Source: Carpediemonas membranifera BICM (Eukaryota > Protista > Fornicata). Taken from it: a DNA stretch of 64,000 nucleotides. The position numbers were made by a program, and so were the translations under genes. The notes beneath the pieces were generated by a model that searched no databases, was not told where the DNA came from, and saw only the letters and a list, made by a program, of their open reading frames with translations. Shown in pieces: positions 5,655 to 64,000 of the stretch; within the stretch, counting starts at the first letter, position 1, and each line of letters begins with the position of its first letter. Location of the stretch: the NCBI GenBank assembly GCA_019828565.1, contig JAHDYR010000050.1:59613-123612 (forward strand). The letters are read 5' to 3'.

Positions 5655-6779
5655 CACCCTGGACAGTATGGGTGTGGACATGTAGGTCAGACTTGATCTG
5701 GAAGAGGGGTTCGAAGACCTTGTTGGTGAGGACAGAGATCACGGCATGCAACTCTTGTTCGTATGTTGACCAATTCGACATGGTCTTGTCGTAGGTCTTC
5801 TGGAAACAGGCCAGAATTGAGCGAGTACCGTCCTCCTCATCTTGTATTAGCACGCCTCCTTCGCCAAGTGATGAAGCGTCGGTGTAAATGTGCCAGGGTC
5901 TATCGAGGTCTGGGTATGTTAGGCTGATGTGAAGCGCCAACTGGGACTTGATGTCGTCAAAAGCAGTCAGTTGTCGTCGCGTTTGGCAACGCGGAGGGCA
6001 AGGCGCTGGAGATCATCCATGGCGGTGGGCTTGCGTTCAGCCTTCTTGAACTTCATGACCTCCTTGAAGGGCTTCGGACGTAGGTTGTCGGTGAAGATCC
6101 TCATAGTCTTTCAGAAAGCCTGAGGGGGATTGAGGATCGGGATCGTCGTCATCAGGGGCATCACCGTCGACGTGCCTTACAGGGACGATGGCTGCTTCTT
6201 CGTAGTCGCTGTCGGAGCTGCTGTCGGATTCGGAGTCGGAGTCGTTGTCGTCATCACGTTGTAGTACGGTGTGCAGGTTAAAAACCTCGTTGAAGCGGTG
6301 GATATAGTCTCGGACTAGAACGATTCTAGACTTCTTGTGCGTTGCGTCTACGGCACAGACAATCTTATCGAGACGTTCCTTGAGTGAGAGTAGGTCTCTT
6401 GGAGCGATCAGACGCTCGATGAGGTGACCCACCTCTTCGTCAGTGAGCGTGTCCAGATCGGCATCGAACTGGAGCTCGAGGGCGTTGTAGAGGTCGTCGT
6501 TTAAAAACAGGGAGATCTTGGCCTCGGGGTAGTATACCTGGAACTTTCTGAATGAGCGCTTGGCGGCCCGCCAAGAGTCGGCGGAAAGACCGGCCAAGGG
6601 GATACTGGGCTGCTCTATGGGAGTAGGCAACACCATGATGGAGAGTATTTATACTGTGCTCGAGAGGACGGAAAAACAACTTGGTGCTTTAGTCAAAGAG
6701 AAGTCGACACAACAGTGTCGACCGGAATGGCGGATCGAATCGCCAATCAAATAAAATATTTGATTGGCACACTGCCACA
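5655..6779 (-). mobile_element. Ty3/gypsy element F, internally deleted remnant (5' LTR, gag, RNase H fragment)
   Basis: LTR-like 6655-6779 (TGTG...CACA). Gag 6636->~5965 is homologous to the gag of 11723-15697 and is joined to RNase H (IYTDASSLGEGGVL..WSTYEQELHA). Truncated near 5660. Confidence 0.8.
6655..6779 (-). repeat. 5' LTR of element F (125 bp, no partner visible)
   Basis: TG...CA ends with TGTG/CACA inverted termini. It interrupts the 7118 gag ORF, and F's gag ATG lies 18 nt downstream. Confidence 0.7.
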
Positions 6780-7118
6780 GAGGTCGTCCTGTAGGAGATC
6801 GATGATCGCCCTGTGGCGCAAGCGAACTACGTCACCCCAGGGGGTGGATTTCGGCTTCGGATCGGAACCCTGCGCGATGACGTCGGGAGTGAGGGCATCC
6901 CACATCCAGGAGAACGTGGGGTATGCCTCTGTGGGGCGCCATGCGGCCTCTAGCAGTTCGACGGACTCTGGGGTCCACGCGTGCAGGAACGTCCGCGGAC
7001 GTCTAACGTTGAAGACTTCGCGGTGCCATACCTCGTAGCCTGCAAGCAAGGAAGGGATGTCCTTAACTATTAGACTGGTGTGTGCGTCAGTGGAGGCAGA
7101 GTATCGATATTGTGCCAT
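6780..7118 (-). pseudogene. Probable gag N-terminus of a tandem A-family element, interrupted by element F
   Basis: ATG lies 25 nt after the 7144 LTR end and palindrome. The ORF runs into F's LTR at 6779. Confidence 0.55.
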
Positions 7119-7143
7119 GTTGTTGTGGTCTGTTTACATAAAC

Positions 7144-7195
7144 TGCGGCAGGGTGACTTAGTGGAGTCGATCAGGGTGACTTCAATGACTCGACA
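7144..7195 (-). repeat. Putative 52-bp LTR of element A family
   Basis: TGTCGA...GCCGCA, directly preceded by PPT gagaggggaag and followed by palindrome + ATG. Contains an internal 11-bp direct repeat, cagggtgactt. Confidence 0.6.
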
Positions 7196-8082
7196 CTTCC
7201 CCTCTCATGATCGACTACCGTGAACCTTTGCCGCGAAACTTGCGCTTATAGGCGGCGAACTGAAGTTCGTACGACGGATGTTCCGCGAGGTAGACGTCAA
7301 GGGCGGCTAGCTGGTCGTAATACGCGTTGTAGGGAATGTATGAGTTCTCGGACACCTCAAGCCCAGTCCAGTGGACCAAAAGCTCGATCTTACCGCGGCG
7401 GACGCGGTGGCTGACGATGTAGTCAACCTGCTGTTCATCCTGCTCGTAGGCGGCGATGCGCTCGAGTGCCTCAAGGCTGATCTCGCCGCGATGGAAACGA
7501 ACGAGACGGTCCTGGTGGACGACGATCTCTGCCTTCGTGACGAGATCACGAATCCGGAATGCGTTGGGGCTCTTCCCTCCCCCAAGCATTATAAGGGGCC
7601 CCCGAAGAGGCGGGAGGAGCTTCGGAGCCCTGGAGGGGTACCTCAGCAGGACGAGTTCCTCGCGGGCCCAGTCGATCTTCTCAGTTGGCTGTGCCGACTC
7701 GTTGACACGCTCATATGCCTTGATGCGAGCGCGCGCTTGCTCGTGAATCGCCAGTACGTCCGAGTGGAACGTCTTGATGGCCGTATGGACGTCTGTGTGT
7801 CCTTCCTGTTGCGTTGCGTTGATGAGAGCGGTTGCTCCGATCTGAGTAAGAGCCGATGTGTGCGAAAAGAGGATGTTGAATGGCGAGAATCCCGTAGTGG
7901 AATGTTCTGTTGAGTTGATAACGTGCTGAACGATCGGGATGAGTGAAAGCCAGTTCTTTGTCTCGCTGTCGAGCAACAGGGCCCGAAGTCTACGAGCAAT
8001 GGTGCCGTTTGCACGTTCCACCACGCCGTTGCTTTGGGGGTGGTACGCAGTGCTGAATCTGTGCTGCAATGAGAGGCGCTTG

Positions 8083-8209
8083 TGTTGTAGGCGCGCGGGG
8101 GTAGAACAACAACGAACAATGCGAAGTGTTTAACAACAAAAGACAAATCAAGACCAGATCGTAATCAGATCAGGAATAAATATATGCATGGATCTAAAGA
8201 TCCACGACA
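8083..8209 (-). repeat. 3' LTR of element B
   Basis: Identical to 11238-11364; TGTCGT...ACAACA. Confidence 0.95.
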
Positions 8210-11200
8210 CTTCCCTCCCATGGTCAGTAATTGGGCGCCACTGAGCTATGGTGAGCCCAGTTGCTCCCTCGGGATGCTCTAAGGGGGAAATCAGGATCAA
8301 AATCTCGTCAGCAATCAATTGATGACGACATCCAACGAGTTTTCCTATTGCTGGAAGTAATGCCAGTTGAATGAGCACGATCCCAACAAGAGCGCGAAAA
8401 TGGCCCTTAGAAGGCCCAACGAGGCCTCAATGGCGAGTTCTCGCTATTTTCGCTTTCTTCCCTCCGTTCGAGCTCGTAGCCGCCTAAGATCTCAACGACG
8501 AGCCATATAAGTAATCAATATCAAGTAGTTAGCCGTATAGAAGCGGTATCCACCACCAGTTACTTAGTTATGTTCAAATTAGTTAGTTTTCGGATGGTGG
8601 TGGCGGTGAAAGCGGTAGAGAACGAAGAAACAGAGGTCCATTTACGTGCAGTATGGACATGTTGCGGCTATGATGATGGCTTAAGCCACCACTTGTACCG
8701 TCTTAAGTTCTTCTTGAGCCTGGGGTGAGCGGCAAGGTACGCTTCGAACGCCTCGAGCTGATCCATAGACTTATCGAACTCGTTCCATGTGGAGTCGGCG
8801 TCATCGTACCCCTCATACGCGACGGACAGTTGCAGCCGTCCAGCTCGGATAGTGCTCCATCGTCTTTGTGTCGACGAGAGAGTCTTGGCAAAATATGCGA
8901 CGGGTTTTCCCTCGGAGTTGGTCAGCACACCGCCTATCCCGACGTCAGAAGCGTCTGTAAATAAATGCAGTGCCTCTCTGGGACGTGGGTGGACTAGGAC
9001 TTCCTCGTTCAAGAGGCGGTCCTTGATCCAGGTTGAGGCAGCGTCCTGCTCCTGTCCCCAGTCAAACTTGGATGCCCTCGTGAGTGAGATAAGGGGTTCC
9101 ATCCTCGTTGCGTAGTCGGGTAGGAGAGCGCGGAAGTAGTTAGCTAGACCAATGAGGGCGCGGAGACCAGTGAGAGATGTCGCGGGGCGTAGGGCCTTAA
9201 TGGCGTCGAGGCGATCAGAGGAGACCCGCTTACCGTGTGCGTCAATGTGCCAGCCCAGATAGTCTATCTCCGTGGCGGAGAACACAGACTTCGCTAGATT
9301 GAGCTTCAGGCCATGCCTGGAAAGGCGAGACAGCACATCTTGAAGGTTTGCGAGGTATTCCTCTGGATCGGCCGAAAACTACTATATCATCGATGTAGAC
9401 CAAGCACTTAGTGTAGAGTGCACCGCCCATAGCCTTCTCAAGAGCCCGCTGCATGTGAATAGGCGCGTTTTTCAGCCCAAAGGGCATACGGCAGTATTGC
9501 AGCTTTTTCTTTCCAGCTGTAAAAGCTGTGAGAGGCCTAGAATGGGGGTCAATCTCAACCTGGTGAAATGCTTTTGTGAGGTCCAAGGCAGCGAAAAACT
9601 GCATGCCCTCGAGATGAGACACGAGGTCATCGATCAATGGTAGGGGATGTATAAGGTCCAGGGTGACCTTGTTGAGCTCCCGAAAGTCCAGACACATCCT
9701 GGCTTCACCGTTGCGTTTGCCAGCCATGACAATAGGGTTGTTGTATGGGGAGTCAGACGGCTCCAGGACTCGTAGAGACTCTAGGGTGTCTGTTTGACGA
9801 TGAATCTCTTTCATCACGGAGTCGGAGTATCTGTATGGATAACGGTTGATGACTTGGGCATCCTTGGTGCGTATGGTGAAGGGATCTAGGAGAGATGGGG
9901 ACGAAATGTCGCCGGTGACGTCGTACTTCTTCAGTAGCCTTTGGATCTCTTCTCTAAATAGTTCGATCCGCGGCTCATCGGGTTCTTCCGCCATGGCGTC
10001 CAGTTCCATGTCCTCCCTCGTCATCCAGGATGGAGATGTCGGAGACCTCTGGGATCTCGAAAAGGCCTGTGTTCCGTAACGTGGGGAAGCCAATGACGGC
10101 GTCGAAATCAAGGTTTGGGAGGATGATAAACTTGATATCGGCTGTCAGGTCGTGGCCTGTCACGGAGGGAAAGTGGACTGAGAGTTGCGCGATATGGGTG
10201 CACACAACAATCTGTCCGGTGGCTAGCCTGATACGATGGCGCTCTGGATTGAGCGTGACACCGATTGACTTCGCGAGGGCTAGGCTGAGGAAATTCGCGG
10301 TGGCTCCAGTGTCGTATAGTGCCATGACCTTGTGGTCCCCGAGGTGAATTGGGTAGATTGGTCGATCACGCACATCGGTGCACGAATGGGCTTCATCAAT
10401 AGCGTCCAGGTAATCTTCAGTCAACTCAAGGCAGGGCTGATCTTTTAATTCAGCTTCTGCCTTGGTCTCGTACCGAACGCGTTCCTGCTCCTTGGCCTGT
10501 CTGAGGGAGAGCTGCATCGTCTTGCGCATACTGCGCTTGTCGGCCTCGGTCTTGCACCTTTGGCGCAGACGGGCGTCGCTGATGTTCGATAGGAATTTGG
10601 TTACGCAGATGAGACTCCTTGGGGCGAACGTCACAGCAGTTTTGCAGGGTACGGCGGTACAGCAGACAGTAGTGCATCATGTTCTCGTATAGCTCGCGGC
10701 CCTTCGAAAAGCTTATATCGTTGAAGCGATCGAGGGCACTCTGCTTGTCACGGGGCTTGAAGATACGGTTGACGGCGTCAATAAAGAACTTGTTGAGATG
10801 CTGGGCTGAAGCGTAAAGCATCGTCGGATCGTTCATGTCGGACTCGTGGGAGAAGATAGAGTCGATGGAGACGTGGTCAGGAGCTTCGGAGGAGGAAGAG
10901 GAAGAGGCGGAGGATGAAGAATCACTGGAGCTGTCGTCGTCGAGAGCTTGTTCTTCTGCCGGAGGCGGAAGAAAGAGAAGTGGATCTCGAGGCTGGGCCT
11001 GAGGGCGTTGGCGTCGGAGGGCTACGTAACGCATCAAGCGTCGAACGTCTTCACTTTCAAGGGCGAAAGTCTCAAGCACAGTGCGTGCAACGCACTCGTA
11101 TATCGGCGCAGGATCGCGTGCTCGAACGGCGTAAAGGTGTAGCTTTCTCTGAAGGAGTACCAGCCCTTTGCCTTAGTGGACGACAGGTATGGGGCGAAAT

Positions 11201-11237
11201 AATTCGTTAGTTGCTCAATGTTCATCAGTAATATTAC

Positions 11238-11364
11238 TGTTGTAGGCGCGCGGGGGTAGAACAACAACGAACAATGCGAAGTGTTTAACAACAAAAGACA
11301 AATCAAGACCAGATCGTAATCAGATCAGGAATAAATATATGCATGGATCTAAAGATCCACGACA
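11238..11364 (-). repeat. 5' LTR of element B
   Basis: Identical to 8083-8209. Confidence 0.95.
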
Positions 11365-11430
11365 GCTTGTTGAGCTCGTCGATCACTGCGTTCTTAAACT
11401 GCGTCCCCTGGTCGCTCTGTATGCAGAGGG

Positions 11431-11559
11431 TGTGAAGGGTGCACTGCTTTATATGGCGACACCAATTGTGTCGAGTCGAGACGGCCATGACCGTATCGAG
11501 ATCAGGGGATTATATGTAGAGGGTAATTATATGTATATATATTATATGTATATATCACA
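11431..11559 (-). repeat. 3' LTR of element C
   Basis: TGTGA...TCACA; matches 15728-15857. Confidence 0.95.
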
Positions 11560-11722
11560 CTACCCCCTCCCCACCCAAAAAAATAAATCCTCACTCCTGA
11601 GAAAAAAAAATCCAGGGCAAATCTCTGACCCTTGACGTAATCGTCCAGAAGTCGGCGGATAGTCCAGGAGTCGATAAATCGTCGAGGAGTCCGCAACAAC
11701 GAAGTTCGTCGTCGACATTTCC

Positions 11723-14700
11723 CTAATGGCGCTTCGGGATGGTTCCTTCCAGCCTTTTCCTACTTACTGATGTCAAAGTGTCCAAATAGTCGTCCAGAGC
11801 TCTTAGCTGCGCATTCGCCGCGTTCAACGGTTCCCAAGTGGCTTCATCTGGTTCAAAACCGGCCCATTCGATCAAGATGGCCGAACGATTCTTCCTACTA
11901 CCGAGCTTGTGGCCTACGATCCTTTCGACAACGAATTCCTGATGATCCCGTGCCGCTAAGCGCACCGCTTGCTCCATCGAGACCTTAGCCACGCTTATCC
12001 GTTCCTCATGGATCAGTACCACCTTGTGCGAGATTAAGTCCTTCATGCGCCAGGTGTTCGGGCTTTCCCCTTGCCCGACGGCCTGCATCGGTCCACGGGC
12101 CTTAGCAGTCAACTTCGTCTGTCTCGTTGCCCACCTCACAAAATAGAGGTCGCCAGTCCGTACCTTAGACTGAGACTCAGCCGGCTGTTTCGCAGCCTGG
12201 CGGCGTTCATACTCACCCACCGCTTGTTCCGCTGCCGCTCTGAAGCCCTGCCGAGCCCGTGCCCACTCTGCCAGATCCGCCGGGGCCCCGACAGCCTCCG
12301 CCATCGGTGCCAACTGCTCGGCCGACTTAAGAACGGCGGGTGAGATGCCGAAGAGGCATTGGAGTGGGCTCATGCCCCCTAGCGTGCTGTGTGGCGCGCT
12401 GTTAATCACCAGCTGCGCGACCGGGAGCCAGTGCTCCCACTGGTCGTCTTCCGCCTCCAACAACAGCTTGCGTAGAGCTCGGACCAACGTGCCATTGGCT
12501 CTCTCCACTATGCCATTACTAGCAGGATGATATGCGGTGGAGAATCGATGGTTGAGGGTCAGTCGAGTCGTGACTTGGTTGACGAGTTCATTTCGGAACT
12601 GCGAGCCTTGGTCAGTCTGGATCGTCTGTGGTACTCCCCATCGACCACACACGCGGGCAACCACCTCGGCCGCCCCCTGGGCGTCGGTGCTCTTCACCGG
12701 GTAGACGTCCACGTACTTCGAGAACGCATCAATGACTACGACAACGTACTGGTTGCCGTGCGGTGATTGGGGGAGGGGCCCGATAGTATCAAGCTGCACC
12801 ACCTCGAATGGCTGCCTGTGCTGCGTGGAGTGCCAGGGGACTCTCGTACGCCCCGGTTCCCGTGCCTTCTGGCATATGGGGCACTCTTCGACCCACTGGC
12901 GAGTGAAGGGTCTAATCTCCTCCCATCGATCACCCGCCCGGTCCTGCATTGCTGCCAATGGAACGTGGCCCGCACTGCCCCCATGTAGAGACTCTAGTAA
13001 TGCACGAGCGTCGTCAGGAATCTGTTGCCGGTCGAGTAAGTTTGTCTCCATCGGCAGTCGGGATAGGGCATCCGCTACTACGTTGTCCTTCCCGGCTACA
13101 TGCCGCAGCCTGAACGGATACTCGCCCAGGATAATCCTCCACCTCTCGAGCTTGGCGCTGAGGTCCTTCCGCTTGTGAAGGAATAGTAGGTTCTTGTGGT
13201 CGGAACACACAGTGAGGTCTGGGTGTAGCTTGAACAGCGGGGCGAGGTCGGGCTGTGTCACGCAGTGTACAATGGCGTATAGTTCCTTGTCATACGTCGA
13301 CCACCGCCCTTGAACTGCCGAGAACTTCTTGCTGAAAAAGGCAACTACCTGTTCTTCCCCTGGGTCACCCTGAAGCAGGACCCCGCCGATGCCCTCGTCA
13401 GAAGCATCAGTGTATAGCTGCCACGGCTTTGTCAGGTCGGGGAACACTAGCGCCGCTGCGTTCGCTACCGTCTCTGCGAGCTCGCGTACTATGCCGTCGT
13501 GCTCGTCGGTCCACTGCCCCATATCCTTGATCTCGTAGAGCGGGGCGAGGACCCTCTGGCAGTCCGGTATGAACCTTGCCAGATAGTTGAATTTTCCAAT
13601 GATGCCGCGGAGATCTGTCATGTTGTTGGGCCTAGCTAGGGCCCTGAGCGAGGCAATCCTCGACTCCGACACGCGACTGCCGGTTCCGTCAATGACGAAC
13701 CCGACCACTTCCACGCTCTTGGCTCTGAACGTGCACTTCTTGGGTGCCAGCCTTAGTCTGGCCGCTCTCAAACACTCGAAGACCGTCCGGAGTGTAGCAA
13801 GGTATTCCTCTGCCGTCCGGGCATAGTTCAGAATATCGTCGATGTACACGCAAGCGCCCTTGTGCAAGACTGGTGCCAGGCTGCGCTGCATCTCCCGCTG
13901 GAACACCGCAGGAGCATTCCTCAAGCCGAACGGCGTGCGAACAAACTCGCAATAGTCGTCGGGGGTGACGAACCCCGTCTTGAAAACGTCTTCGGGCCGG
14001 ACCTTCATCTGATGGTACCCTGAAGTGAGGTCCATACTGCTGAACCACTCAGCACCTGCGGCCTCGTGGACGAAGGACCGTAGGTCCGGCAGCGGGAACC
14101 GGTCCGGCTTGGTTACGTTGTTGACCGCAGTGAGGTCCACACAGAGTCGAATAGCCCCATCCTTCTTCGTGGCGACCACTATTGGGCTTGCCCACGGCCC
14201 ACGGCAGTCTCGGATAATACCTTCCCGCTTCAACCGGCGGACTTCCTGCCGCACTAACTCCCGCTTAGGGGGTCCCAGGTGTCTCGGGCGGCTCTGGATG
14301 AGCGCGTCTTCGGATGTATCTATGACCATGGGGCCAAGGGTAGAGCCCTCCGGGGGTAGTCCCCCGAACAGCTCGGCAAACTCCCGGATCAGCGCCCATA
14401 TGTCGGGAGCTATGTCTGAATCCGGCACAGTGATGGCCGACAGTGAGTCATCCAACGTCTCCTCCACCTGATTAATCTCAACATCAATGTCATCCCCATC
14501 GTCGCCATCCTCGGCCTTATCGATGAGCCTGATGAAGAGTTCATCGTTCGTCACGACTCCGAGCTCGCGAAGAATGTCTAGACCGACGATGGTCTTGACC
14601 GGAGCGCCTGGGAGTACCACTAGCCGTACCTGTATCTCGACGTCAACCGGCGTCAGCCTCTCCAATATTATTGTAGCGGTGGCATAGGTGTTTGTCTTCG

Positions 14701-15697
14701 ACACTCGCTGATCAGCGGTCACGTAGTGTATCGTTGGCCCGGTGCAAGTTGGTAAGTGAAATTGTTCCACTGCTCCCTCCGTCACCGCTGAGAACGTCGC
14801 CCCTGTATCCAAACGAAACGAACACTGCTGGCCATTTATTTGGCCGGAGGTCATGAGGGGCTTGGCGTTCTCTAGGAGGTTCACCTCGGGCTTGCCTGTC
14901 GGACACTGGGAGTCCCAGTGCCAGCCACCGCAGCTAGAGCAAGGGCGATGGGGAGGCTTCTTGGCCGGGTCGACGTCATTGGCCTTGTCGGAGCTGTTGT
15001 GGCGGGCCTCGCGACGATCGGCTGGAGAAGAGCGACTGTCGGACGGAGAAGGCTTGGAGGTCTGGCCTCGGGGCTTCTTGGACTTGGTCTTTGCCTGGGG
15101 CGGCCTATAATAGCCGTAACGTTCGGCTTCTTGGCGGGCCGCGTCGTCTCGCTTTGCTTCTCGGTTGGCTAGGGAGTACATTTCCTTGAGGTTCGAGGGG
15201 CGCTTGACTTTGGCCGCAAATTTGACCGCCTCTCGGAACGGCTTCGGCTCCAGGGCATCGATGAAGAGCTTCATTGCTTGGCGCTCCATCTGTGAGACGT
15301 GGTCCTCAATGAGGCCACCCTCACTCTCTGACTCCGAGTCGCTGTCCTCCATGTCGACGAATGTCGCACGGAAGGACCGAATAAACTGGCGAATGAGTGC
15401 TACACGTTCGGAATGTTCGTCTGTGGGGCAAATGAGGCTTTGGAGCTTTGACTTAAGCTCGGCAGTGGATGACGGAGCCAAAAAGCGATGCAAGTAGTCC
15501 GCGATGGTTTCGTCGTCTTCGTCGATGAGATTCTCCTCTCCGAAGAAGTCTTCCAGGAGGTCCAGCGTCTCGGGAGCCATGAAGGTAGCCATACGAACGT
15601 TGCGGTCTCTTGTAATTGCCTTGAGACGGGCAAGATCCGTTTGGAAACGGCGTAGGTCTTCAGAATTAAAGTCGGCATCGAGCGACGGGACAATCAT
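11723..15697 (-). CDS. Gag-Pol polyprotein 1324 aa (Gag-CCHC, protease, RT, RNase H, integrase, chromodomain)
   Basis: CSSCGGWHWDSQC; LDTGAT; DLTSGYHQ, PFGL, YIDD; YTDAS; H..GH..CPIC; LDTIGP, TDQG, VER; FVVERIVGH..IEWAGF..TWEP. Confidence 0.97.
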   Translation of the reverse strand: MIVPSLDADFNSEDLRRFQTDLARLKAITRDRNVRMATFMAPETLDLLEDFFGEENLIDEDDETIADYLHRFLAPSSTAELKSKLQSLICPTDEHSERVALIRQFIRSFRATFVDMEDSDSESESEGGLIEDHVSQMERQAMKLFIDALEPKPFREAVKFAAKVKRPSNLKEMYSLANREAKRDDAARQEAERYGYYRPPQAKTKSKKPRGQTSKPSPSDSRSSPADRREARHNSSDKANDVDPAKKPPHRPCSSCGGWHWDSQCPTGKPEVNLLENAKPLMTSGQINGQQCSFRLDTGATFSAVTEGAVEQFHLPTCTGPTIHYVTADQRVSKTNTYATATIILERLTPVDVEIQVRLVVLPGAPVKTIVGLDILRELGVVTNDELFIRLIDKAEDGDDGDDIDVEINQVEETLDDSLSAITVPDSDIAPDIWALIREFAELFGGLPPEGSTLGPMVIDTSEDALIQSRPRHLGPPKRELVRQEVRRLKREGIIRDCRGPWASPIVVATKKDGAIRLCVDLTAVNNVTKPDRFPLPDLRSFVHEAAGAEWFSSMDLTSGYHQMKVRPEDVFKTGFVTPDDYCEFVRTPFGLRNAPAVFQREMQRSLAPVLHKGACVYIDDILNYARTAEEYLATLRTVFECLRAARLRLAPKKCTFRAKSVEVVGFVIDGTGSRVSESRIASLRALARPNNMTDLRGIIGKFNYLARFIPDCQRVLAPLYEIKDMGQWTDEHDGIVRELAETVANAAALVFPDLTKPWQLYTDASDEGIGGVLLQGDPGEEQVVAFFSKKFSAVQGRWSTYDKELYAIVHCVTQPDLAPLFKLHPDLTVCSDHKNLLFLHKRKDLSAKLERWRIILGEYPFRLRHVAGKDNVVADALSRLPMETNLLDRQQIPDDARALLESLHGGSAGHVPLAAMQDRAGDRWEEIRPFTRQWVEECPICQKAREPGRTRVPWHSTQHRQPFEVVQLDTIGPLPQSPHGNQYVVVVIDAFSKYVDVYPVKSTDAQGAAEVVARVCGRWGVPQTIQTDQGSQFRNELVNQVTTRLTLNHRFSTAYHPASNGIVERANGTLVRALRKLLLEAEDDQWEHWLPVAQLVINSAPHSTLGGMSPLQCLFGISPAVLKSAEQLAPMAEAVGAPADLAEWARARQGFRAAAEQAVGEYERRQAAKQPAESQSKVRTGDLYFVRWATRQTKLTAKARGPMQAVGQGESPNTWRMKDLISHKVVLIHEERISVAKVSMEQAVRLAARDHQEFVVERIVGHKLGSRKNRSAILIEWAGFEPDEATWEPLNAANAQLRALDDYLDTLTSVSRKRLEGTIPKRH

Positions 15698-15727
15698 TGC
15701 TGGGGATCATTACCGCAGTGTTAACAC

Positions 15728-15857
15728 TGTGAAGGGTGCACTGCTTTATATGGCGACACCAATTGTGTCGAGTCGAGACGGCCATTGACCGTATCGAGAT
15801 CAGGGGATTATATGTAGAGGGTAATTATATGTATATATATTATATGTATATATCACA
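15728..15857 (-). repeat. 5' LTR of element C
   Basis: Matches 11431-11559 with one extra T. Confidence 0.95.
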
Positions 15858-18452
15858 AGGGGGGCGCCGAACAGTGACCAGACGTCCAGCATGGCGCTGG
15901 CTGCCTCGTCGGCTCCGGTGGAATGCACCGGCTTCAGCACGACGAACTTGGAGAACACGTCGATGAAGACAATGACGTGCTTGAAACCGTCGATGTCGGG
16001 CAGGGGCCCGATGGTGTCGATTTGAACCGACTCGAAGGGCGTGCCCTTCTGGGTGGAGTGCCACGGTGCCGTAGTCTTTGGGTGGGGCCGGAGCTTTTGG
16101 CAAATCGGGCACGTGGCGACGAATTCTTTGACGTCCTGTGCCATGGTGGCTCAAGACTGACCCGACTCGCGAAGGTTAGCGAGGGTCTGCTTGACGGAAA
16201 CGTGGCCGTTGGCTCCGCCGTGAGCGGTGGTGATCATCTGATTGATCTCGCTTGTGATTTCCAGAATGTGCCCGCTTGGACGCGAAAGTGCGTCAGCGAC
16301 GACGTTTGTGGCTCCAGGTATGTGTTGTATCTCGAATGTGTACTCGCTGAGGATGAGGCGCCATCTCGTGAGCTTCCTCGTGCCCTCTTCCGATTTCTGC
16401 AGCAACCAGACAATGTTTCGGTGATCTGTAAGAACTTTGAATGGCTTCAGCTTCAGTATCTGGGAGAATTCCGGTCTTGTAATGCAATAGACGATAGCAT
16501 AGAGCTCCTGCTCAATGGTTGCCCAGCGTTGCTGGGTCTCCGAGAATGTCTTGCTGAAGAAGGCTAGCGGCTTCTTTGAGCCGTCAGCCTCGTGCTGCCA
16601 CAGCACACCGCCCGCCGCGATGGCTGAAGCGTTCGTTTCAAGCGACCATGGGCGTTCCCAGTTAGGGAGAGCGAGGGCTGTGTGGCGGGTGCAGAGCTTC
16701 TTAAGCTCGTCGAAGGCCTTGTCATGTACTTCTGTCCAGTCAAGGCGGTCGCCCTTGTCGGGCGAGCCCTTCGGGAGGGCGTTGAGGGTTGCCGCTGCGG
16801 CGCCGAGGTCCGGGATGAAGTTGGAAAGATGATTAAACTTGCCCATTGTCCTTCTCAGTTCCGTGACCGTTGTCGGGCGGGTCAGCTCGAGCAGGGCCGC
16901 AATACGGCCGGGGCTGACTGCGTGGCCAGCTTGGTTGACGATGAAGCCGCAAACTTCGACTTCCTTTGCCCCAACGACGCACTTGTCCGCGCGGAGTCGG
17001 AGGTCGTTGGCCTCTAGGCAGGCCAGCACGGCGTCCATCGTCTGGAGAAAATCTTCCGCGGTTTTCGCGAAGACGAAAATGTCGTCGACGTAGACTCGCA
17101 CTCCGGCAATGTCGCCGAGAATGCTCTCCATAGCTCGTTGGAACTTACCAGGAGCGTTCTTCAGTCCGAATGGAACTCTCAGAAACTCGAACTGGTGACC
17201 AGGAACGACAAACGATGTCAGTGGGATGCTGTCTGGTTTGAGCTTCTGCTGCCAACAGCCGGAACGGAGATTTAGGGACGCAAAATAGCTACATCCCGTC
17301 GCCTCGTGAGGGAATTCCCTCAGATCGGGGAGTGGAAAGTTGTCCGCGATCGTGGCGTCGTTGAGCCCGTTATAGGCGACGCAGAATCGAGGCTCGCCGT
17401 TCTTCTTGGTGGCCATCGTATGGGGGCTTGTGTACTGTGACTGGCTCGGACGGATAACGCCAAGGGCGGTCATCTTCTCGATCTCACCCAGCGCTCCCGT
17501 TCCCGGTTTGCCGACGAGTGGCCGTGGGCGGGACTTCAAGTGGAGGGGCTGCGAGAGCTCTATCCGATGAGGTTCAAGCTTGCTGCCGTCGATGGGGAGT
17601 ACGGGGTTGAAGACCCCGCTTCGTCTGGCCAGGAGATCCTTGACTTATTGAACGAACTCGGGCCCGTGGTCGTCGGGGACCCGGACTTTCGCAAGCTCGT
17701 CGGTGGAGCTGGTCTCTTCAACGCATAAGTCAACGTCGAGCATCGAGTGCTCCTCCAAGTCGTCTGTGTCTTCGAGCTTACCGGGCATTATGAGCAGCCG
17801 GTCGTTGTGAATATAGCCGAGGTGGGTGAGGAGGTCGCGTCCGAGGAGGATGCGCTCCCTCTCTCCGTGGATGTCATGGAATGTCCACGTCAGGCCGACG
17901 GTCCTGCCGTCAGCGCTTGGCAGTTCGATCGTGGTAACGATCTTCTCCTGGGTGGAGATCACGCGGTCGTCGGCTGCGCGGAGTACGACGTCGGAGTGCT
18001 CCCTGGGGAGGGCCAGCCGGTCTGCGAGAGCCTCGCTGACTATACAGACGTCAGCCCCGCTGTCGAGTTTGCCTGGGAGGTTGATGGTCGGGTCGGGGTG
18101 TGTGATCACTTGATGAACACTTGACTGTTCTTGCCGTACGTTGCCGTGAATGGTCACGGGGACCGTGATTGGTGCCTCCGACGTGAGGACCTCGTCAATG
18201 TTGGCCTTTTGGCCTGGTACGGCAGTGCACTGTTCGGTAGTGTGGCGCTGCCAGCAGTGGACCTTACAGAACTTGTCCCCGGGGACGATATAGTGGGCCT
18301 TGTCCTTATACTGGACATATGGATCAGGGCCAATGACCTTCTGAGCCGCGGGCTTGCCGTTGCTCGGTCCTTCCTTCGGGTTCAGGCTGCCGCTAGCGCC
18401 GTGGCGAGATGAAGAGTTCGAGCCTCCGGAACCATGATTGTGTGAAGCGAAC

Positions 18453-38589: not shown

Positions 38590-38734
38590 TGCTTCAATAG
38601 CAATAGGATAAATTTACAAAGTAAATACACAAATGTGCTGATGTAGGGCATGGTGGCGGATCTGGCGCTGGTGGCGGACGTGGAGACACTGGGGGTGCTC
38701 CACAACCACGTCCACTGCAAGGGTGACTCATGTA

Positions 38735-38993
38735 GAGTCGCCCGAAAAGCAGAAGCATGCGGACAACACAATAGAGGATGATTCAGAGATCGAGACAAGT
38801 GGTAAGAGGGTGAGGACTGAGTAAATGGATTGCAAATGAGTCTTTTTAATGTCTCACCACCTGTTTGGGCCTCAGCGCTGTCGTTCAGGCCAATCCACGT
38901 TTGTGGATCCGTGCAGTTTATGGCTTATCGACCGGACATCTCCTGAACTGAGCGCCAGGGGGCGGAGGTGGCGTTGGCGTGGGGCGTGGAGGC
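38735..38993. repeat. 259-bp inverted copy of 60281-60539 (also 62094-62352)
   Basis: Direct reverse-complement match read from the sequence. Confidence 0.92.
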
Positions 38994-39778: not shown

Positions 39779-41970
39779 TTTTTTTGACGACGCGTCGAGA
39801 CAATTCATGCGTGCGCAGGGTACTAACAGGCTCAAACAACAGCTCTGTCTGAGTAGACGCCTCCTCTAGGTCTCGCACAGTCTGAGTCTCTGCATGCTCA
39901 CCCTGCGGCGAAAACTGCTGGCATTTTCCCACCATCCTCGGCTTATCAGGATCAGGACCCAGCGCAGTCATGTAAACAGGTACCTCAACCCGCTTCTCGA
40001 CTATCCTGACAGGCTGGGAGTCCCTGCGGGAAGGGGCTTGCGGGTGAACTCGCGTCCTGGTCGGCCCCCCGTTCGCCTCGTTGTGCAGAGCCTCCATGAA
40101 GGCATTGAAGCCGTCATCACGGCCCACCTTCTGCGTCACAAACGACATGACGCATGTGACCGACATCTCAAAGGATGCAAAATCGTCAGCACTGGAAACA
40201 TCGCGATTGTGGCAGATTGAGTTTCGAGCTGCCAACAGCTCGCGTATATGTCTCTTATCAGCGTGGTGAAGATCAGGAACACGATGTAGGATCGCTTGCA
40301 AAAGCATAGCCGGATCCATCTCGCCACCGTCACCACGGTACCTCGCGATGTACTCCTGCAGCTTCGGAATCATCCTCAGTAGCGCTTCAAACATCATGCT
40401 GGCGTATCCTGCTGAATCCTTCACCCCAGAGCTCATATCGGTTTCTTCAGAACGAAATTCTAAAGAAATGTTCGGTGGTAAGTGAGATCACTGCGCATCT
40501 AGAGACAGCAGAAACGTAACCTACAGCCCATATTGATGTGGGCTGGTCTTATCCGGATGTCCAAGGACCTTGATTCGCTCTGGGGTAGTCCCCCCATGAC
40601 CGTCAGGCACGCGAACCGCATCCTGCACGAAGCGGGGATGCAGAGTCTGAAAAAGACCCATCTCTCTGTCCGATCTGGATACCCCCTGACGATAGATGGA
40701 ATGAATGAAGCTGTAAACATATCCATTGACTCTGAATCTTTTATTTCTCCATCTGCGAGTTAAGCCAGGCCACTGCCTTTCCCGTCAGATATACCTTACG
40801 CGTGTCGTGCACCTTCTTTGTTGCTCTTGCGGCTGAAGCATCAACAGTGGCCTGCTTCAACAAATCTCGGCAGCTAGACTTCGGCGTCTTGGTGCCACGC
40901 CGCGTGCAGGCCCACTCTCTATCGTCCACGGACTCACCACACACAACGCATGACCCTGCGAATACGGTCGGTGGCTTCTCCTTCAGCTTCTGTCGAAGCA
41001 GATCGCACATCGCGGTCTTGACGACGCGTCGAGACAATTCATGCGTGCGCAGGCTACTAACAGGCTCAAACAACAGCTCTGTCTGAGTAGACGCCTCCTC
41101 TAGGTCTCGCACAGTCTGAGTCTCTGCATGCTCACCCTGCGGCGAAAACTGCTGGCATTTTCCCACCATCCTCGGCTTATCAGGATCAGGACCCAGCGCA
41201 GTCATGTAAACAGGTACCTCAACCCGCTTCTCGACTATCCTGACAGGCTGGGAGTCCCTGCGGGAAGGGGCTTGCGGGTGAACTCGCGTCCTGGTCGGCC
41301 CCCGTTCGCCTCGTTGTGCAGAGCCTCCATGAAGGCATTGAAGCCGTCATCACGGCCCACCTTCTGCGTCACAAACGACATGACGCATGTGACCGACATC
41401 TCAAAGGATGCAAAATCGTCAGCACTGGAAACATCGCGATTGTGGCAGATTGAGTTTCGAGCTGCCAACAGCTCGCGTATATGTCTCTTATCAGCGTGGT
41501 GAAGATCAGGAACACGATGTAGGATCGCTTGCAAAAGCATAGCCGGATCCATCTCGCCACCGTCACCACGGTACCTCGCGATGTACTCCTGCAGCTTCGG
41601 AATCATCCTCAGTAGCGCTTCAAACATCATGCTGGCGTATCCTGCTGAATCCTTCGCCCCAGAGCTCATATCGGTTTCTTCAGAACGAAATTCTAAAGAA
41701 ATGTTCGGTGGTAAGTGAGATCACTGCGCATCTAGAGACAGCAGAAACGTAACCTACAGCCCATATTGATGTGGGCTGGTCTTATCCGGATGTCCAAGGA
41801 CCTTGATTCGCTCTGGGGTAGTCCCCCATGACCGTCAGGCACGCGAACCGCATCCTGCACGAAGCGGGGATGCAGAGTCTGAAAAGACCCATCTCTCTGT
41901 CCGATCTGGATACCCCTGACGATAGATGGAATGAATGAAGCTGTAAACATATCCATTGACTCTGAATCTT

Positions 41971-42900
41971 TTATTTCTCCATCTGCGAGTTAAGCCAGGC
42001 CACTGCCTTTCCCGTCAGATATACCTTACGCGTGTCGTGCACCTTCTTTGTTGCTCTTGCGGCTGAAGCATCAACAGTGGCCTGCTTCAACAAATCTCGG
42101 CAGCTAGACTTCGGCGTCTTGGTGCCACGCCGCGTGCAGGCCCACTCTCTATCGTCCACGGACTCACCACACACAACGCATGACCCTGCGAATACGGTCG
42201 GTGGCTTCTCCTTCAGCTTCTGTCGAAGCAGATCGCACATCGCGGTCTTGACGACGCGTCGAGACAATTCATGCGTGCGCAGGCTACTAACAGGCTCAAA
42301 CAACAGCTCTGTCTGAGTAGACGCCTCCTCTAGGTCTCGCACAGTCTGAGTCTCTGCATGCTCACCCTGCGGCGAAAACTGCTGGCATTTTCCCACCATC
42401 CTCGGCTTATCAGGATCAGGACCCAGCGCAGTCATGTAAACAGGTACCTCAACCCGCTTCTCGACTATCCTGACAGGCTGGGAGTCCCTGCGGGAAGGGG
42501 CTTGCGGGTGAACTCGCGTCCTGGTCGGCCCCCCGTTCGCCTCGTTGTGCAGAGCCTCCATGAAGGCATTGAAGCCGTCATCACGGCCCACCTTCTGCGT
42601 CACAAACGACATGACGCATGTGACCGACATCTCAAAGGATGCAAAATCGTCAGCACTGGAAACATCGCGATTGTGGCAGATTGAGTTTCGAGCTGCCAAC
42701 AGCTCGCGTATATGTCTCTTATCAGCGTGGTGAAGATCAGGAACACGATGTAGGATCGCTTGCAAAAGCATAGCCGGATCCATCTCGCCACCGTCACCAC
42801 GGTACCTCGCGATGTACTCCTGCAGCTTCGGAATCATCCTCAGTAGCGCTTCAAACATCATGCTGGCGTATCCTGCTGAATCCTTCGCCCCAGAGCTCAT
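41971..42900 (-). CDS. Swt1-like HEPN RNase-domain protein with TQT motifs and C-terminal Cys cluster (RxxxxH intact)
   Basis: MDPAMLLQAI...ELLAARNSICH; AETQT, ASTQT; CVVC..C..C. Confidence 0.75.
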   Translation of the reverse strand: MSSGAKDSAGYASMMFEALLRMIPKLQEYIARYRGDGGEMDPAMLLQAILHRVPDLHHADKRHIRELLAARNSICHNRDVSSADDFASFEMSVTCVMSFVTQKVGRDDGFNAFMEALHNEANGGPTRTRVHPQAPSRRDSQPVRIVEKRVEVPVYMTALGPDPDKPRMVGKCQQFSPQGEHAETQTVRDLEEASTQTELLFEPVSSLRTHELSRRVVKTAMCDLLRQKLKEKPPTVFAGSCVVCGESVDDREWACTRRGTKTPKSSCRDLLKQATVDASAARATKKVHDTRKVYLTGKAVAWLNSQMEK

Positions 42901-43203
42901 ATCGGTTTCTTCAGAACGAAATTCTAAAGAAATGTTCGGTGGTAAGTGAGATCACTGCGCATCTAGAGACAGCAGAAACGTAACCTACAGCCCATATTGA
43001 TGTGGGCTGGTCTTATCCGGATGTCCAAGGACCTTGATTCGCTCTGGGGTAGTCCCCCCATGACCGTCAGGCACGCGAACCGCATCCTGCACGAAGCGGG
43101 GATGCAGAGTCTGAAAAAGACCCATCTCTCTGTCCGATCTGGATACCCCTGACGATAGATGGAATGAATGAAGCTGTAAACATATCCATTGACTCTGAAT
43201 CTT

Positions 43204-44133
43204 TTATTTCTCCATCTGCGAGTTAAGCCAGGCCACTGCCTTTCCCGTCAGATATACCTTACGCGTGTCGTGCACCTTCTTTGTTGCTCTTGCGGCTGAA
43301 GCATCAACAGTGGCCTGCTTCAACAAATCTCGGCAGCTAGACTTCGGCGTCTTGGTGCCACGCCGCGTGCAGGCCCACTCTCTATCGTCCACGGACTCAC
43401 CACACACAACGCATGACCCTGCGAATACGGTCGGTGGCTTCTCCTTCAGCTTCTGTCGAAGCAGATCGCACATCGCGGTCTTGACGACGCGTCGAGACAA
43501 TTCATGCGTGCGCAGGGTACTAACAGGCTCAAACAACAGCTCTGTCTGAGTAGACGCCTCCTCTAGGTCTCGCACAGTCTGAGTCTCTGCATGCTCACCC
43601 TGTGGCGAAAACTGCTGGCATTTTCCCACCATCCTCGGCTTATCAGGATCAGGACCCAGCGCAGTCATGTAAACAGGTACCTCAACCCGCTTCTCGACTA
43701 TCCTGACAGGCTGGGAGTCCCTGCGGGAAGGGGCTTGCGGGTGAACTCGCGTCCTGGTCGGCCCCCCGTTCGCCTCGTTGTGCAGAGCCTCCATGAAGGC
43801 ATTGAAGCCGTCATCACGGCCCACCTTCTGCGTCACAAACGACATGACGCATGTGACCGACATCTCAAAGGATGCAAAATCGTCAGCACTGGAAACATCG
43901 CGATTGTGGCAGATTGAGTTTTGAGCTGCCAACAGCTCGCGTATATGTCTCTTATCAGCGTGGTGAAGATCAGGAACACGATGTAGGATCGCTTGCAAAA
44001 GCATAGCCGGATCCATCTCGCCACCGTCACCACGGTACCTCGCGATGTACTCCTGCAGCTTCGGAATCATCCTCAGTAGCGCTTCAAACATCATGCTGGC
44101 GTATCCTGCTGAATCCTTCGCCCCAGAGCTCAT
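43204..44133 (-). CDS. HEPN protein copy, R->Q variant
   Basis: AQNSICH (C>T at 43922). Confidence 0.75.
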   Translation of the reverse strand: MSSGAKDSAGYASMMFEALLRMIPKLQEYIARYRGDGGEMDPAMLLQAILHRVPDLHHADKRHIRELLAAQNSICHNRDVSSADDFASFEMSVTCVMSFVTQKVGRDDGFNAFMEALHNEANGGPTRTRVHPQAPSRRDSQPVRIVEKRVEVPVYMTALGPDPDKPRMVGKCQQFSPQGEHAETQTVRDLEEASTQTELLFEPVSTLRTHELSRRVVKTAMCDLLRQKLKEKPPTVFAGSCVVCGESVDDREWACTRRGTKTPKSSCRDLLKQATVDASAARATKKVHDTRKVYLTGKAVAWLNSQMEK

Positions 44134-44437
44134 ATCGGTTTCTTCAGAACGAAATTCTAAAAGAAATGTTCGGTGGTAAGTGAGATCACTGCGCATCTAG
44201 AGACAGCAGAAACGTAACCTACAGCCCATATTGATGTGGGCTGGTCTTATCCGGATGTCCAAGGACCTTGATTCGCTCTGGGGTAGTCCCCCCATGACCG
44301 TCAGGCACGCGAACCGCATCCTGCACGAAGCGGGGATGCAGAGTCTGAAAAAGACCCATCTCTCTGTCCGATCTGGATACCCCTGACGATAGATGGAATG
44401 AATGAAGCTGTAAACATATCCATTGACTCTGAATCTT

Positions 44438-45367
44438 TTATTTCTCCATCTGCGAGTTAAGCCAGGCCACTGCCTTTCCCGTCAGATATACCTTACGCGT
44501 GTCGTGCACCTTCTTTGTTGCTCTTGCGGCTGAAGCATCAACAGTGGCCTGCTTCAACAAATCTCGGCAGCTAGACTTCGGCGTCTTGGTGCCACGCCGC
44601 GTGCAGGCCCACTCTCTATCGTCCACGGACTCACCACACACAACGCATGACCCTGCGAATACGGTCGGTGGCTTCTCCTTCAGCTTCTGTCGAAGCAGAT
44701 CGCACATCGCGGTCTTGACGACGCGTCGAGACAATTCATGCGTGCGCAGGGTACTAACAGGCTCAAACAACAGCTCTGTCTGAGTAGACGCCTCCTCTAG
44801 GTCTCGCACAGTCTGAGTCTCTGCATGCTCACCCTGTGGCGAAAACTGCTGGCATTTTCCCACCATCCTCGGCTTATCAGGATCAGGACCCAGCGCAGTC
44901 ATGTAAACAGGTACCTCAACCCGCTTCTCGACTATCCTGACAGGCTGGGAGTCCCTGCGGGAAGGGGCTTGCGGGTGAACTCGCGTCCTGGTCGGCCCCC
45001 CGTTCGCCTCGTTGTGCAGAGCCTCCATGAAGGCATTGAAGCCGTCATCACGGCCCACCTTCTGCGTCACAAACGACATGACGCATGTGACCGACATCTC
45101 AAAGGATGCAAAATCGTCAGCACTGGAAACATCGCGATTGTGGCAGATTGAGTTTTGAGCTGCCAACAGCTCGCGTATATGTCTCTTATCAGCGTGGTGA
45201 AGATCAGGAACACGATGTAGGATCGCTTGCAAAAGCATAGCCGGATCCATCTCGCCACCGTCACCACGGTACCTCGCGATGTACTCCTGCAGCTTCGGAA
45301 TCATCCTCAGTAGCGCTTCAAACATCATGCTGGCGTATCCTGCTGAATCCTTCGCCCCAGAGCTCAT
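44438..45367 (-). CDS. HEPN protein copy, R->Q variant
   Basis: AQNSICH (C>T at 45156). Confidence 0.75.
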   Translation of the reverse strand: MSSGAKDSAGYASMMFEALLRMIPKLQEYIARYRGDGGEMDPAMLLQAILHRVPDLHHADKRHIRELLAAQNSICHNRDVSSADDFASFEMSVTCVMSFVTQKVGRDDGFNAFMEALHNEANGGPTRTRVHPQAPSRRDSQPVRIVEKRVEVPVYMTALGPDPDKPRMVGKCQQFSPQGEHAETQTVRDLEEASTQTELLFEPVSTLRTHELSRRVVKTAMCDLLRQKLKEKPPTVFAGSCVVCGESVDDREWACTRRGTKTPKSSCRDLLKQATVDASAARATKKVHDTRKVYLTGKAVAWLNSQMEK

Positions 45368-59876: not shown

Positions 59877-60449
59877 TACTTTCTGTGATGCAGGAATGAG
59901 ATCAATGCTGCTGACAGGTCTCGAGATGGCAGAGGTGCTGGAGAAGAGAGCGCAGAAAAGGCATCAGAAGTAAATGTCCTAAGGAGATGTAACAGAAGTA
60001 GCAAGCAATGTTTAATAACGTATGAACAGTCCTTTTGATGTTGTTTAGTGATTTTGTGCATTAACGACCGAGAACAGTGGAGTGCAACGCAGATGTTGGT
60101 TATTGATGGTAGATGGCGCGCTTTTGACGACAGCTGGTTGCTTTTGCAGTATAAAGAACCGCATAGCTGCCACTAGTTCCTTCCAATAATGCTTTCCCGC
60201 CATTTTGAGGTTGGAATGAAATTCCAAGCACCGTGCACTTTATGTAATTGCCCAATATCAACGCCACCCCCGCCCCCAGCGCCTCCACGCCCCACGCCAA
60301 CGCCACCTCCGCCCCCTGGCGCTCAGTTCAGGAGATGTCCGGTCGATAAGCCATAAACTGCACGGATCCACAAACGTGGATTGGCCTGAACGACAGCGCT
60401 GAGGCCCAAACAGGTGGTGAGACATTAAAAAGACTCATTTGCAATCCAT

Positions 60450-63430: not shown

Positions 63431-64000
63431 TGCTGCATAAGCTGCACATGAATCCAGCCTGGTCGATTCCTTCACGCGGCAGACAAGAAGAGAGACGTGC
63501 CAGGCATGGCACTCTCTCTGGCAATGGCAAGTCTTCAACGGGAAGCCGCGAACGCCTCGTTGATCTGTCTTGGCATTTGTTGAGGACAACACAGCTGTAA
63601 ACGACAATAAGATGAAACAGAAGTAGCAAGCAATGTTTAATAACGTATGAACAGTCCTTTTGATGTTGTTTAGTGATTTTTGTGCATTAACGACCGAGAA
63701 CAGTGGAGTGCAACGCAGATGTTGGTTATTGATGGTAGATGGCGCGCTTTTGACGACAGCTGGTTGCTTTTGCAGTATAAAGAACCGCATAGCTGCCACT
63801 AGTTCCTTCCAATAATGCTTTCCCGCCATTTTGAGGTTGGAATGAAATTCCAAGCACCGTGCACTTTATGTAATTGCCCAATATCAACGCCACCCCCGCC
63901 CCCAGCGCCTCCACGCCCCACGCCAACGCCACCTCCGCCCCCTGGCGCTCAGTTCAGGAGATGTCCGGTCGATAAAGCCATAAACTGCACGGATCCACAA

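Follow-up and report, generated by a model that had tools for sequence, protein, structure and literature searches.

Ultra-compact chromoviruses of Carpediemonas membranifera with a family-specific palindrome in place of a tRNA-type primer-binding site

From what primer do LTR retrotransposons begin minus-strand DNA when the bases after the LTR do not resemble a tRNA-type site? This question is raised by a 64,000-nucleotide stretch of the Carpediemonas membranifera genome (assembly GCA_019828565.1, contig JAHDYR010000050.1, positions 59,613 to 123,612), hereafter the window. In an earlier note on this DNA, it was claimed that four families of LTR elements carry, instead of a tRNA primer-binding site, a palindrome that covaries in a fixed register, and that priming occurs either by fold-back or by the annealing of two genomic RNAs.

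The elements of the window and their post-LTR sites

The C. membranifera elements, in the window and among the genome copies, are Ty3/gypsy chromoviruses of 4.4-5.2 kb. Their LTR pairs measure 55-146 nt, have TG...CA ends and are in many cases 100% identical, and a polypurine tract (..GGGAGGGAAG or ..GGGGGTAG) lies immediately 5' of the TG of the 3' LTR. The TSD is 4 bp in 11 elements and 5 bp in element B. Coding sequence accounts for up to ~97% of element length, and the gag ATG is found, across families, from -8 to +56 relative to the LTR end (+1 in L056). C. membranifera can be cultured, and many element copies have identical LTRs, so that replication intermediates should be observable. 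A set of 240-bp direct repeats at 50287-53795, the ends of which are not TG...CA, was set aside as unrelated.

Element C (11431-15857, minus strand; 4427 bp) is an intact chromovirus, delimited by its Pfam domains, its LTR pair and its flanks, with a 4-bp TSD (ccct). Its 5' LTR (15728-15857, minus strand; 130 nt, TGTGAT...TTCACA) pairs with a 3' LTR at 11431-11559 (minus strand). A single ORF (11723-15697) encodes a polyprotein of 1324 aa, in which Pfam places an Asp protease at 284-377, RVT_1 at 511-669, RT_RNaseH at 754-860, rve at 961-1058 and Chromo at 1255-1291; this order, protease - RT - RNase H - integrase - C-terminal chromodomain, is that of a chromovirus. Copies 99% identical to element C are present at G000:C1 and C6. 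Directly after the 130-nt LTR stands the palindromic site CA-GTGTTAACAC-TG (15716-15729, minus strand), centred 5 nt past the LTR end, with the gag ATG at 15697. The same 14-mer recurs after the LTR of a distant relative (L059), and its 12-mer is identical in another element (L072). Two public contigs, from three small sets of guessed kind, end at 15725 and at 15739 (12 nt into the LTR); these two ends weakly suggest that the element C transcript starts within the last tens of LTR bases.

Element B (8083-11364, minus strand; 3282 bp, TSD caagc) has two 127-nt LTRs (8083-8209 and 11238-11364, minus strand) that are 100% identical. Its palindromic site, CA-GTAATATTAC-TG, occupies 11226-11239 (minus strand), with an ATG at 11225-11223. 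Given that Pfam and tblastn searches returned no integrase match and that its reading frames are broken, element B is, on sequence grounds, probably a non-autonomous copy; the palindrome is retained in it all the same. The B and C sites are both perfect 14-mers that abut their LTRs, just as the earlier note had described them.

For element F, the position assigned earlier to the site was correct, but the self-complementarity was not. The 5' LTR (6655-6779, minus strand; 125 nt) was bounded from 20 genomic copies, comprising 10 matches that continue beyond the LTR into the element body and 10 matches to 3' or solo LTRs, and the site GTATAAATAC (6645-6654, minus strand) follows it directly. In the window copy of this site, a central A/A clash leaves the self-complementarity incomplete. 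Because the F junction reads GTATTAATAC in 9 of 10 genomic copies, the window copy is, by comparison among copies, a mutant. The F gag ORF lies at 6037-6636, and the insertion of element F interrupts the downstream A copy in its gag region.

The A-family site had been placed in the wrong register. As the post-LTR site, GTTTATGTAAAC (7132-7143) was rejected, being internal to an 85-nt LTR (7111-7195, minus strand; TGTCGAG...ATGGCACA) that is delimited by genomic LTR copies. When the window segment 6900-7215 (minus strand) was used as query, LTR copies elsewhere in the genome spanned query positions 20 or 21 to 105, ending at window position 7111. The gag ATG (7118-7116) lies inside this LTR together with GTTTATGTAAAC, and the intact relatives L043 and L044 have 57-nt LTRs that likewise enclose both. 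A polypurine tract (7196-7206, minus strand) precedes the LTR, which lies between the end of pol (ORF 7215-8069) in an upstream A copy and the gag of a second copy; as read from this layout, two A copies in tandem share the single LTR. The true A post-LTR site is ATATCGATAC (7101-7110, minus strand), inside gag codons 3-6, with one mismatch, at its last base. The A junction reads ATATCGATAT in 22 of 24 copies and ATATCGATAC in 2, the window copy included. The perfect form thus predominates within families (9/10 copies of F and 22/24 of A).

Register and covariation of the palindrome

The figure of four families proved too low. A post-LTR palindrome was found in at least 11 families of the C. 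membranifera genome, and such palindromes were also found in relatives from assembly GCA_002919055.1 and from environmental contigs (Logan and ENA). The earlier note had named a failure of conservation in further families as a result that would tell against its claim; these further families carry the palindrome. Across families and relatives there are ~16 different palindromes. In every family examined the palindrome is perfect, has arms of 5-8 and starts at the last A of the LTR; its core is 8, 10 or 12 nt, for a total of 12-16 nt. Pairing between the A at -1 and the T that follows the core holds in 19 of 19 aligned 10-nt-core sites and in 5 of 6 sites with 8- and 12-nt cores. The palindrome is retained despite overlap with coding sequence in L043 (gag codons 3-6) and in L056, where the ATG is at +1. 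It was absent after those 3' LTRs that were examined, and matches to 3' or solo LTR copies of F end 0-4 nt from the LTR end.

Covariation was assessed in 19 sites. Changes on both sides were seen at 5 of 7 pairs, giving 27 double-change cells, compared with 6.7 in shuffles (none of 500 shuffles reached 27). Among the 133 cells counted there was no one-sided or G-U cell, all changes being Watson-Crick on both sides. Pairing was 89% in the true register and fell to 28-46% when the register was slid. Compensated changes were also observed within tight clades, for example ATATCGATAT versus GTATCGATAC, on a tree of this clade only. The earlier claim of a covarying palindrome in fixed register was therefore borne out by both the double changes and the loss of pairing on shifting. 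The window has no general enrichment in palindromes (14 observed with arms of at least 6, compared with 16 expected). A genome survey of the LTR-end motif CACGGCACA, which is informative for recurrent family junctions only, gave no excess over control (233 vs 209).

Search for conventional primers

Given that a host tRNA is the default primer among LTR elements, such a tRNA, or a fragment from within one, would be the obvious candidate, copia and Ty5 being examples. No site begins with TGG, and in none of the palindrome families was TGG found at +1 to +5. When the 20 nt after each LTR were compared with 15 distinct tRNAs (35 genes) of at least 63, the best complement was 5-7 nt and was not anchored at the LTR end. 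Moreover, ~16 perfect palindromes would require as many palindromic pieces of tRNA. Although the comparison covered 15 of at least 63 tRNAs, we regard tRNA priming as barely credible for these elements. Distant relatives (L083 and L085) retain a TGG site, TGGTATCAGAGC or TGGTATTAGAGC, adjoining the LTR, and the recovery of these classical sites in the same search indicates that the method can detect a normal primer site.

The second established route is self-priming of the kind used by chromoviruses of the Tf1/sushi group (Tf1, Tf2, Tj1, Maggy and sushi; PMC10085805), in which the first bases of the transcript fold back onto the site. The present elements are themselves chromoviruses, a group with known self-priming members, which speaks for such a mechanism (PMC10085805, PMC4600332). 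In both cases the elements are Ty3/gypsy chromoviruses that lack a tRNA site, with their own RNA as the presumed primer. However, the Tf1 site complements the first transcript bases in the 5' LTR and needs a three-duplex structure, whereas the Carpediemonas site is complementary only to itself. In ten families, the longest complement of the 14 post-LTR nucleotides within the LTR measured 4-6 nt, a length that shuffled LTRs matched (P 0.2-1.0); a transcript 5' end folded as in Tf1 is therefore unlikely, and LTRs of 55-66 nt leave scant room for the three-duplex "pretzel". On balance, these results leave Tf1-type priming extremely unlikely. A second inverse-complementary block was likewise not evident in the first 90 nt past the LTR (longest 3-6 nt, P 0.08-1.0).

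The earlier note's observations that a TGG or tRNA-type site is lacking and that the LTRs hold no complement of the site have thus stood, and the tRNA alignment that it proposed, run on 15 distinct tRNAs, yielded no anchored match. Combined, these comparisons show, at the level of sequence, that an ultra-compact clade of Ty3/gypsy chromoviruses of C. membranifera and relatives has lost the tRNA-type primer-binding site and has a family-specific Watson-Crick palindrome in its place. A similar loss is known in the dictyostelid Skipper chromoviruses, which lack a TGG site and an LTR complement, as in Carpediemonas, and for which a new kind of self-priming has been suggested (PMC5006619); Skipper differs in having a polypyrimidine stretch where the Carpediemonas elements have a palindrome.

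Self-pairing of the palindrome as a candidate priming mode

We tentatively propose, with confidence just short of even, that the palindrome is the primer-binding site and that a second element RNA, cut after pairing, supplies the identical sequence as its primer. Two genomic RNAs, assumed to be co-packaged, would pair antiparallel through the palindrome; an assumed endonucleolytic cut of one strand at the duplex's 3' edge, which would put the primer 3' end at +10 or +11, would then leave a 3'-OH paired beside the end of U5. Reverse transcriptase would extend this 3'-OH across the U5-R of the partner to give minus-strand strong-stop DNA, and the site in the plus strand would be templated by the primer. 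The likeliest cutting enzyme is assumed, by analogy with Tf1, to be the element's own RNase H. In work attributed to Levin (1996) and to Haag et al. (2000), the RNase H domain of Tf1 was reportedly needed for the RNA-duplex cleavage that makes the primer, and priming in trans was described. The LTR end would then be fixed by the duplex edge, so that the palindrome would be anchored at the terminal A of the LTR whatever its length; and with the primer as template for the site, palindromes lacking exact Watson-Crick symmetry would not reproduce themselves, and G-U pairs would be missing. We also consider possible, at somewhat less than an even chance, that this constitutes a new mode of starting reverse transcription, in which the site is its own primer, the LTR end is given by the duplex edge, and palindromes must be exact to breed true. 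Two points count against the proposal. The long RNA primer (R-U5-palindrome) raises the problem of how plus-strand synthesis would stop past the site, and the absence of G-U pairs would also fit a function at the level of double-stranded DNA.

Of the two mechanisms offered in the earlier note, the annealing of two RNAs fits better and simple fold-back does poorly. In a cis fold-back, the RNA would be cut 3' of the palindrome, and its own small hairpin would prime the U5-R of the same molecule. Monomer folds of the leader do often give a stem of 4-5 bp with a 4-nt loop in the palindrome. Nevertheless, the predicted hairpins are weak, at 0 to -5 kcal/mol with several at 0, compared with -12 to -24 kcal/mol for the predicted two-strand duplex, and a DNA start at the CA of the LTR would leave only ~3 bp to hold the 3' end. 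Furthermore, the four loop bases should be free to vary under fold-back, yet the central four nucleotides are self-complementary in every intact family. On account of the central bases and the weak hairpins we disfavor cis fold-back and judge it quite unlikely.

Short palindromes also pair two genomic RNAs in the leaders of retroviruses, at the dimer initiation site (e.g., the SL1 loop of HIV-1). The Carpediemonas site resembles these as a short 5'-leader palindrome with Watson-Crick pairing. The retroviral site, however, occupies the loop of a hairpin, and a separate tRNA primer site lies upstream of it, whereas the palindrome studied here abuts the LTR, is self-paired in monomer folds rather than exposed in a loop, and has no separate primer site beside it. 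The palindrome might accordingly serve only as an RNA dimerization or packaging signal, the minus strand being primed by a small RNA, by a protein or de novo. Retroviral leader palindromes are classic dimerization sites (discussed in PMC5445492), and the strong predicted homodimer would suit dimerization equally well. Yet dimerization alone does not explain anchoring at the very last base of the LTR by cores of 8, 10 and 12 nt, and an ATG at -8 to +56 (+1 in L056) leaves no space for a separate primer site. In addition, some G-U pairs would be expected if the site were purely an RNA-RNA contact, yet all 133 cells lack them. We therefore regard a dimerization-only role as unlikely.

That same strict symmetry with zero G-U is what would be expected of a palindrome acting as DNA, and a dimeric element or host protein might bind the site as symmetric double-stranded DNA, or in a DNA intermediate, with a role in transcription, integration or cDNA processing. 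Against this, a protein site should conserve its sequence, whereas the ~16 unrelated sequences are alike only in symmetry. The site is also found after the 5' LTR only, not at the outer ends that integrase sees, and its position is the exact point at which minus-strand DNA must start. A DNA-level site is in our judgment very unlikely.

Returning to the self-paired primer, its closest precedent is, by analogy, the palindromic site of the fungal GalEa copia elements. These elements have a Conserved Hairpin Site, lack both a tRNA site and an LTR complement, and their mechanism was left unexplained (Donnart et al. 2017, PMC5445492). The GalEa site stands directly after the 5' LTR and is palindromic when the final A of the LTR, which is followed by CTGATCAGT or CTAATTAGT, is counted (PMC5445492); the Carpediemonas palindrome likewise abuts the 5' LTR and takes in its final A. 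The two systems differ in that GalEa belongs to Ty1/copia, whereas the Carpediemonas elements are Ty3/gypsy, with the order RT - RNase H - integrase. Moreover, one or two sequences prevail in 85% of GalEa families, and a hairpin is formed by a second inverse-complementary block lying 12-41 bp downstream (PMC5445492), whereas Carpediemonas has ~16 freely covarying palindromes and lacks the second downstream block.

The ~16 variants provide a natural covariation series on how the end of a primer sets the LTR boundary. A self-paired site may permit shrinkage to 55-nt LTRs and ~97% coding sequence. To our knowledge, well-studied LTR elements and retroviruses all use a host tRNA as primer, except in the Tf1 group, where the element RNA folds back its 5' end to prime. 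A site whose sole partner is itself would add a third solution to the priming problem, one that does not depend on the host and takes up as few as 12 bases, even within gag. The GalEa site, left unexplained in 2017, might have the same basis, which is testable; if this held for GalEa too, self-pairing would be a recurrent solution when LTR elements abandon tRNA primers.

Chromoviruses in the window and their leader sites

The minus strand of window 6000-17500 carries nested LTR retrotransposons. In element C, a 1324-aa ORF (11723-15697) encodes protease, reverse transcriptase, RNase H and integrase domains together with a C-terminal chromodomain, and this domain set identifies the elements as Ty3/gypsy chromoviruses. 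Element C (minus strand) is intact at 4427 bp, with LTRs at 11431-11559 (129 nt) and 15728-15857 (130 nt). As claimed in an earlier note, the 14-mer CAGTGTTAACACTG lies beside its 130-nt LTR (15716-15729, minus strand). The corresponding claim for element B (8083-11364, minus strand; two identical 127-nt LTRs, duplication caagc) was also borne out, the 14-mer CAGTAATATTACTG being located by the 127-nt LTR at 11226-11239 (minus strand); no integrase match was found in this element, and its reading frames are broken.

For F, the LTR was placed at 6655-6779 (125 nt, minus strand), given that 10 genomic matches begin at the LTR start and continue into the element and 10 others end 0-4 bases from the LTR end. 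The F site GTATAAATAC (6645-6654, minus strand) directly adjoins this LTR as previously stated, but its proposed self-complementarity is interrupted here by a central clash; when the genome was searched by pattern, the junction was GTATTAATAC in the remaining nine copies. The A-family LTR end had been set at GTTTATGTAAAC, which is the wrong register: independent LTR copies span exactly 7195-7111 (minus strand), and both GTTTATGTAAAC and the gag ATG lie inside the 57-nt LTRs of intact relatives. The true A junction, at 7101-7110 (minus strand), reads ATATCGATAC in the window copy; 22 of 24 copies have ATATCGATAT instead. Two A-family copies are also arranged head to tail with one common LTR, in the order pol end, LTR, next gag (window 7111-8069, with 6780-7118); a similar arrangement was seen at a related locus, L062.

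The palindrome in the genome and in relatives

The genome of Carpediemonas membranifera, a free-living metamonad, was examined as 24.2 Mb in 69 contigs. Its assignment to this host follows from a protein that is identical (100%) across all 936 residues to J8273_5646, listed by NCBI under C. membranifera. In a protein search of the genome, related elements numbered in the dozens and many of them had open frames of 1300-1580 aa; LTRs and junctions were surveyed at 20 loci of 10 kb each. LTR pairs measured 55-146 nt and were frequently 100% identical. Target duplications were 4 bp long, and a purine tract lay immediately 5' of the 3' LTR. In every surveyed case, the LTR was followed by a perfect palindrome (GTGTTAACAC, GTAATATTAC, GTATTAATAC, GAATCGATTC, GTGAATTCAC, GTTTTAAAAC, GTATCGATAC, or ATATCGATAT), with arms of 6-7 and a centre exactly 5 nt past the LTR end. 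Relatives with 28-40% protein identity, from GCA_002919055.1, Logan contigs and an ENA metagenome, added ATAATATTAT, ATGGATCCAT, GAAACGTTTC, GTGTACAC, TTGGCCAA, GAAATTTC, AAGTAATTACTT, and AAGTATATACTT. Core length is 8, 10 or 12 nt across families, and the palindrome begins at the terminal A of the LTR, which pairs with the T after the core, with one exception (locus L058, where the LTR end is putative).

Covariation was assessed in an alignment of 19 sites whose core is 10 nt, using 500 shuffles. Changes on both sides were observed at 5 of 7 pairs, and 27 two-sided-change cells were counted versus 6.7 in the shuffles, none of which reached 27. Among the same 19 sites, no cell carried a one-sided (G-U) change. 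Pairing was 89% in register and fell to 28-46% once partner columns were slid; palindromes were not enriched in the window overall. Compensated changes occurred within tight clades of the pol tree, where locus L046 with GTATCGATAC neighbours L048 with ATATCGATAT, and element C with GTGTTAACAC neighbours L035 with GTGAATTCAC. The position-fixed palindrome with compensatory changes envisaged in the earlier note is present in the element families surveyed in this genome and in the relatives.

Two further features were noted at these junctions. TAG, mostly TAGT, follows the core in 7 of the 19 sites (alignment columns 19-22, +11 to +14 past the LTR), with TAGT found after GTGAATTCAC, GAATCGATTC, GTATTAATAC, and GTTTTAAAAC, for example. 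At locus L037, the 5' LTR (7295-7399) lacks the final three bases, ACA, that are present in its own 3' LTR (2472-2579) and in sister copies; the missing bases fall in an ACAACA run where the LTR meets the palindrome.

Literature searches found no earlier account of the post-LTR palindrome for Ty3/gypsy elements or for Carpediemonas. The closest precedent is offered by the GalEa site, described in 2017 and there left without explanation (PMC5445492); the GalEa Conserved Hairpin Site has a second inverse copy downstream, whereas none was found downstream of the Carpediemonas site. Skipper is a further chromovirus group without a TGG site (PMC5006619).

Compact elements and tandem repeats

The shortest LTRs were 55 nt (L048), 57 nt (L043/L044 and L056/L057) and 66 nt (L046/L047), and in these elements both LTRs are identical and the 4-bp target duplications are clean. 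Promoter, repeat region and U5 must all be confined to 55-66 nt. The L056 coding sequence begins with an ATG immediately after the 57-nt LTR and reaches its stop 11 nt ahead of the 3' LTR; in L043/L044, the ATG is within the 57-nt LTR and the site spans gag codons 3-6. Coding sequence almost fills the element in L056:58-4911 and in L044:3362-8043, where the LTR that contains the ATG is the 5' one.

In the genome assembly (G000:C6:749409-755936), three GTTTTAAAAC-family junctions spaced 2167-2168 bp apart are followed by a fourth LTR end, an arrangement suggestive of a short, probably non-autonomous derivative repeated in tandem. The window itself contains a tandem array at 39784-48338 (period ~1233 bp, units 99.5% identical) and a tandem repeat at 59985-64000 (unit ~1.8 kb, 99.8% identity) that continues past the window end; a 272-nt piece of the latter recurs inverted at 38722-38993.

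The palindrome as a candidate primer-binding site

The comparison with host tRNAs proposed in the earlier note covered 15 distinct tRNAs, part of the full set, and gave only unanchored matches of at most 5-7 bases. The statement that the LTRs hold no complement of the sites also stood, as none was found beyond chance, and the Tf1 self-priming scheme is therefore unlikely to apply.

The end of an LTR is defined by the start point of minus-strand DNA. Because the palindrome is anchored to this point at any length, it is most simply regarded as the primer-binding site. It is complementary to itself only and has a self-complementary centre in every case, and the predicted stability of the two-strand duplex (-12 to -24 kcal/mol) far exceeds that of the hairpin (0 to -5 kcal/mol); these properties suggest that its pairing partner would most likely be this site on another RNA molecule. 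Judging from the sequences, two element RNAs may pair via the palindrome, cleavage where the duplex ends would create the 3'-OH, and extension would follow. In Tf1, the RNase H domain is reportedly necessary to cleave an RNA duplex in such a way, and priming in trans has reportedly been seen. The site would then be copied twice over, as template and as primer, and the progeny of a G-U variant would carry an A-C clash; the absence of G-U pairs would fit such double copying.

Two public contigs of uncertain kind span the gag half of element C, one stopping at window 15725, inside the palindrome, and the other at 15739, 12 nt into the LTR. Because both fall short of the 30-nt stop expected for a 31-mer DNA assembly inside a repeated LTR, these ends could be transcript ends.

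Two more distant elements from the metagenome search (L083 and L085, ~30% identity) carry a classical site, TGGTATCAGAGC or TGGTATTAGAGC, a few bases past the LTR. Since these distant relatives keep the classical site, loss of the tRNA site is, as far as sequence comparison indicates, specific to the palindrome-bearing clade.
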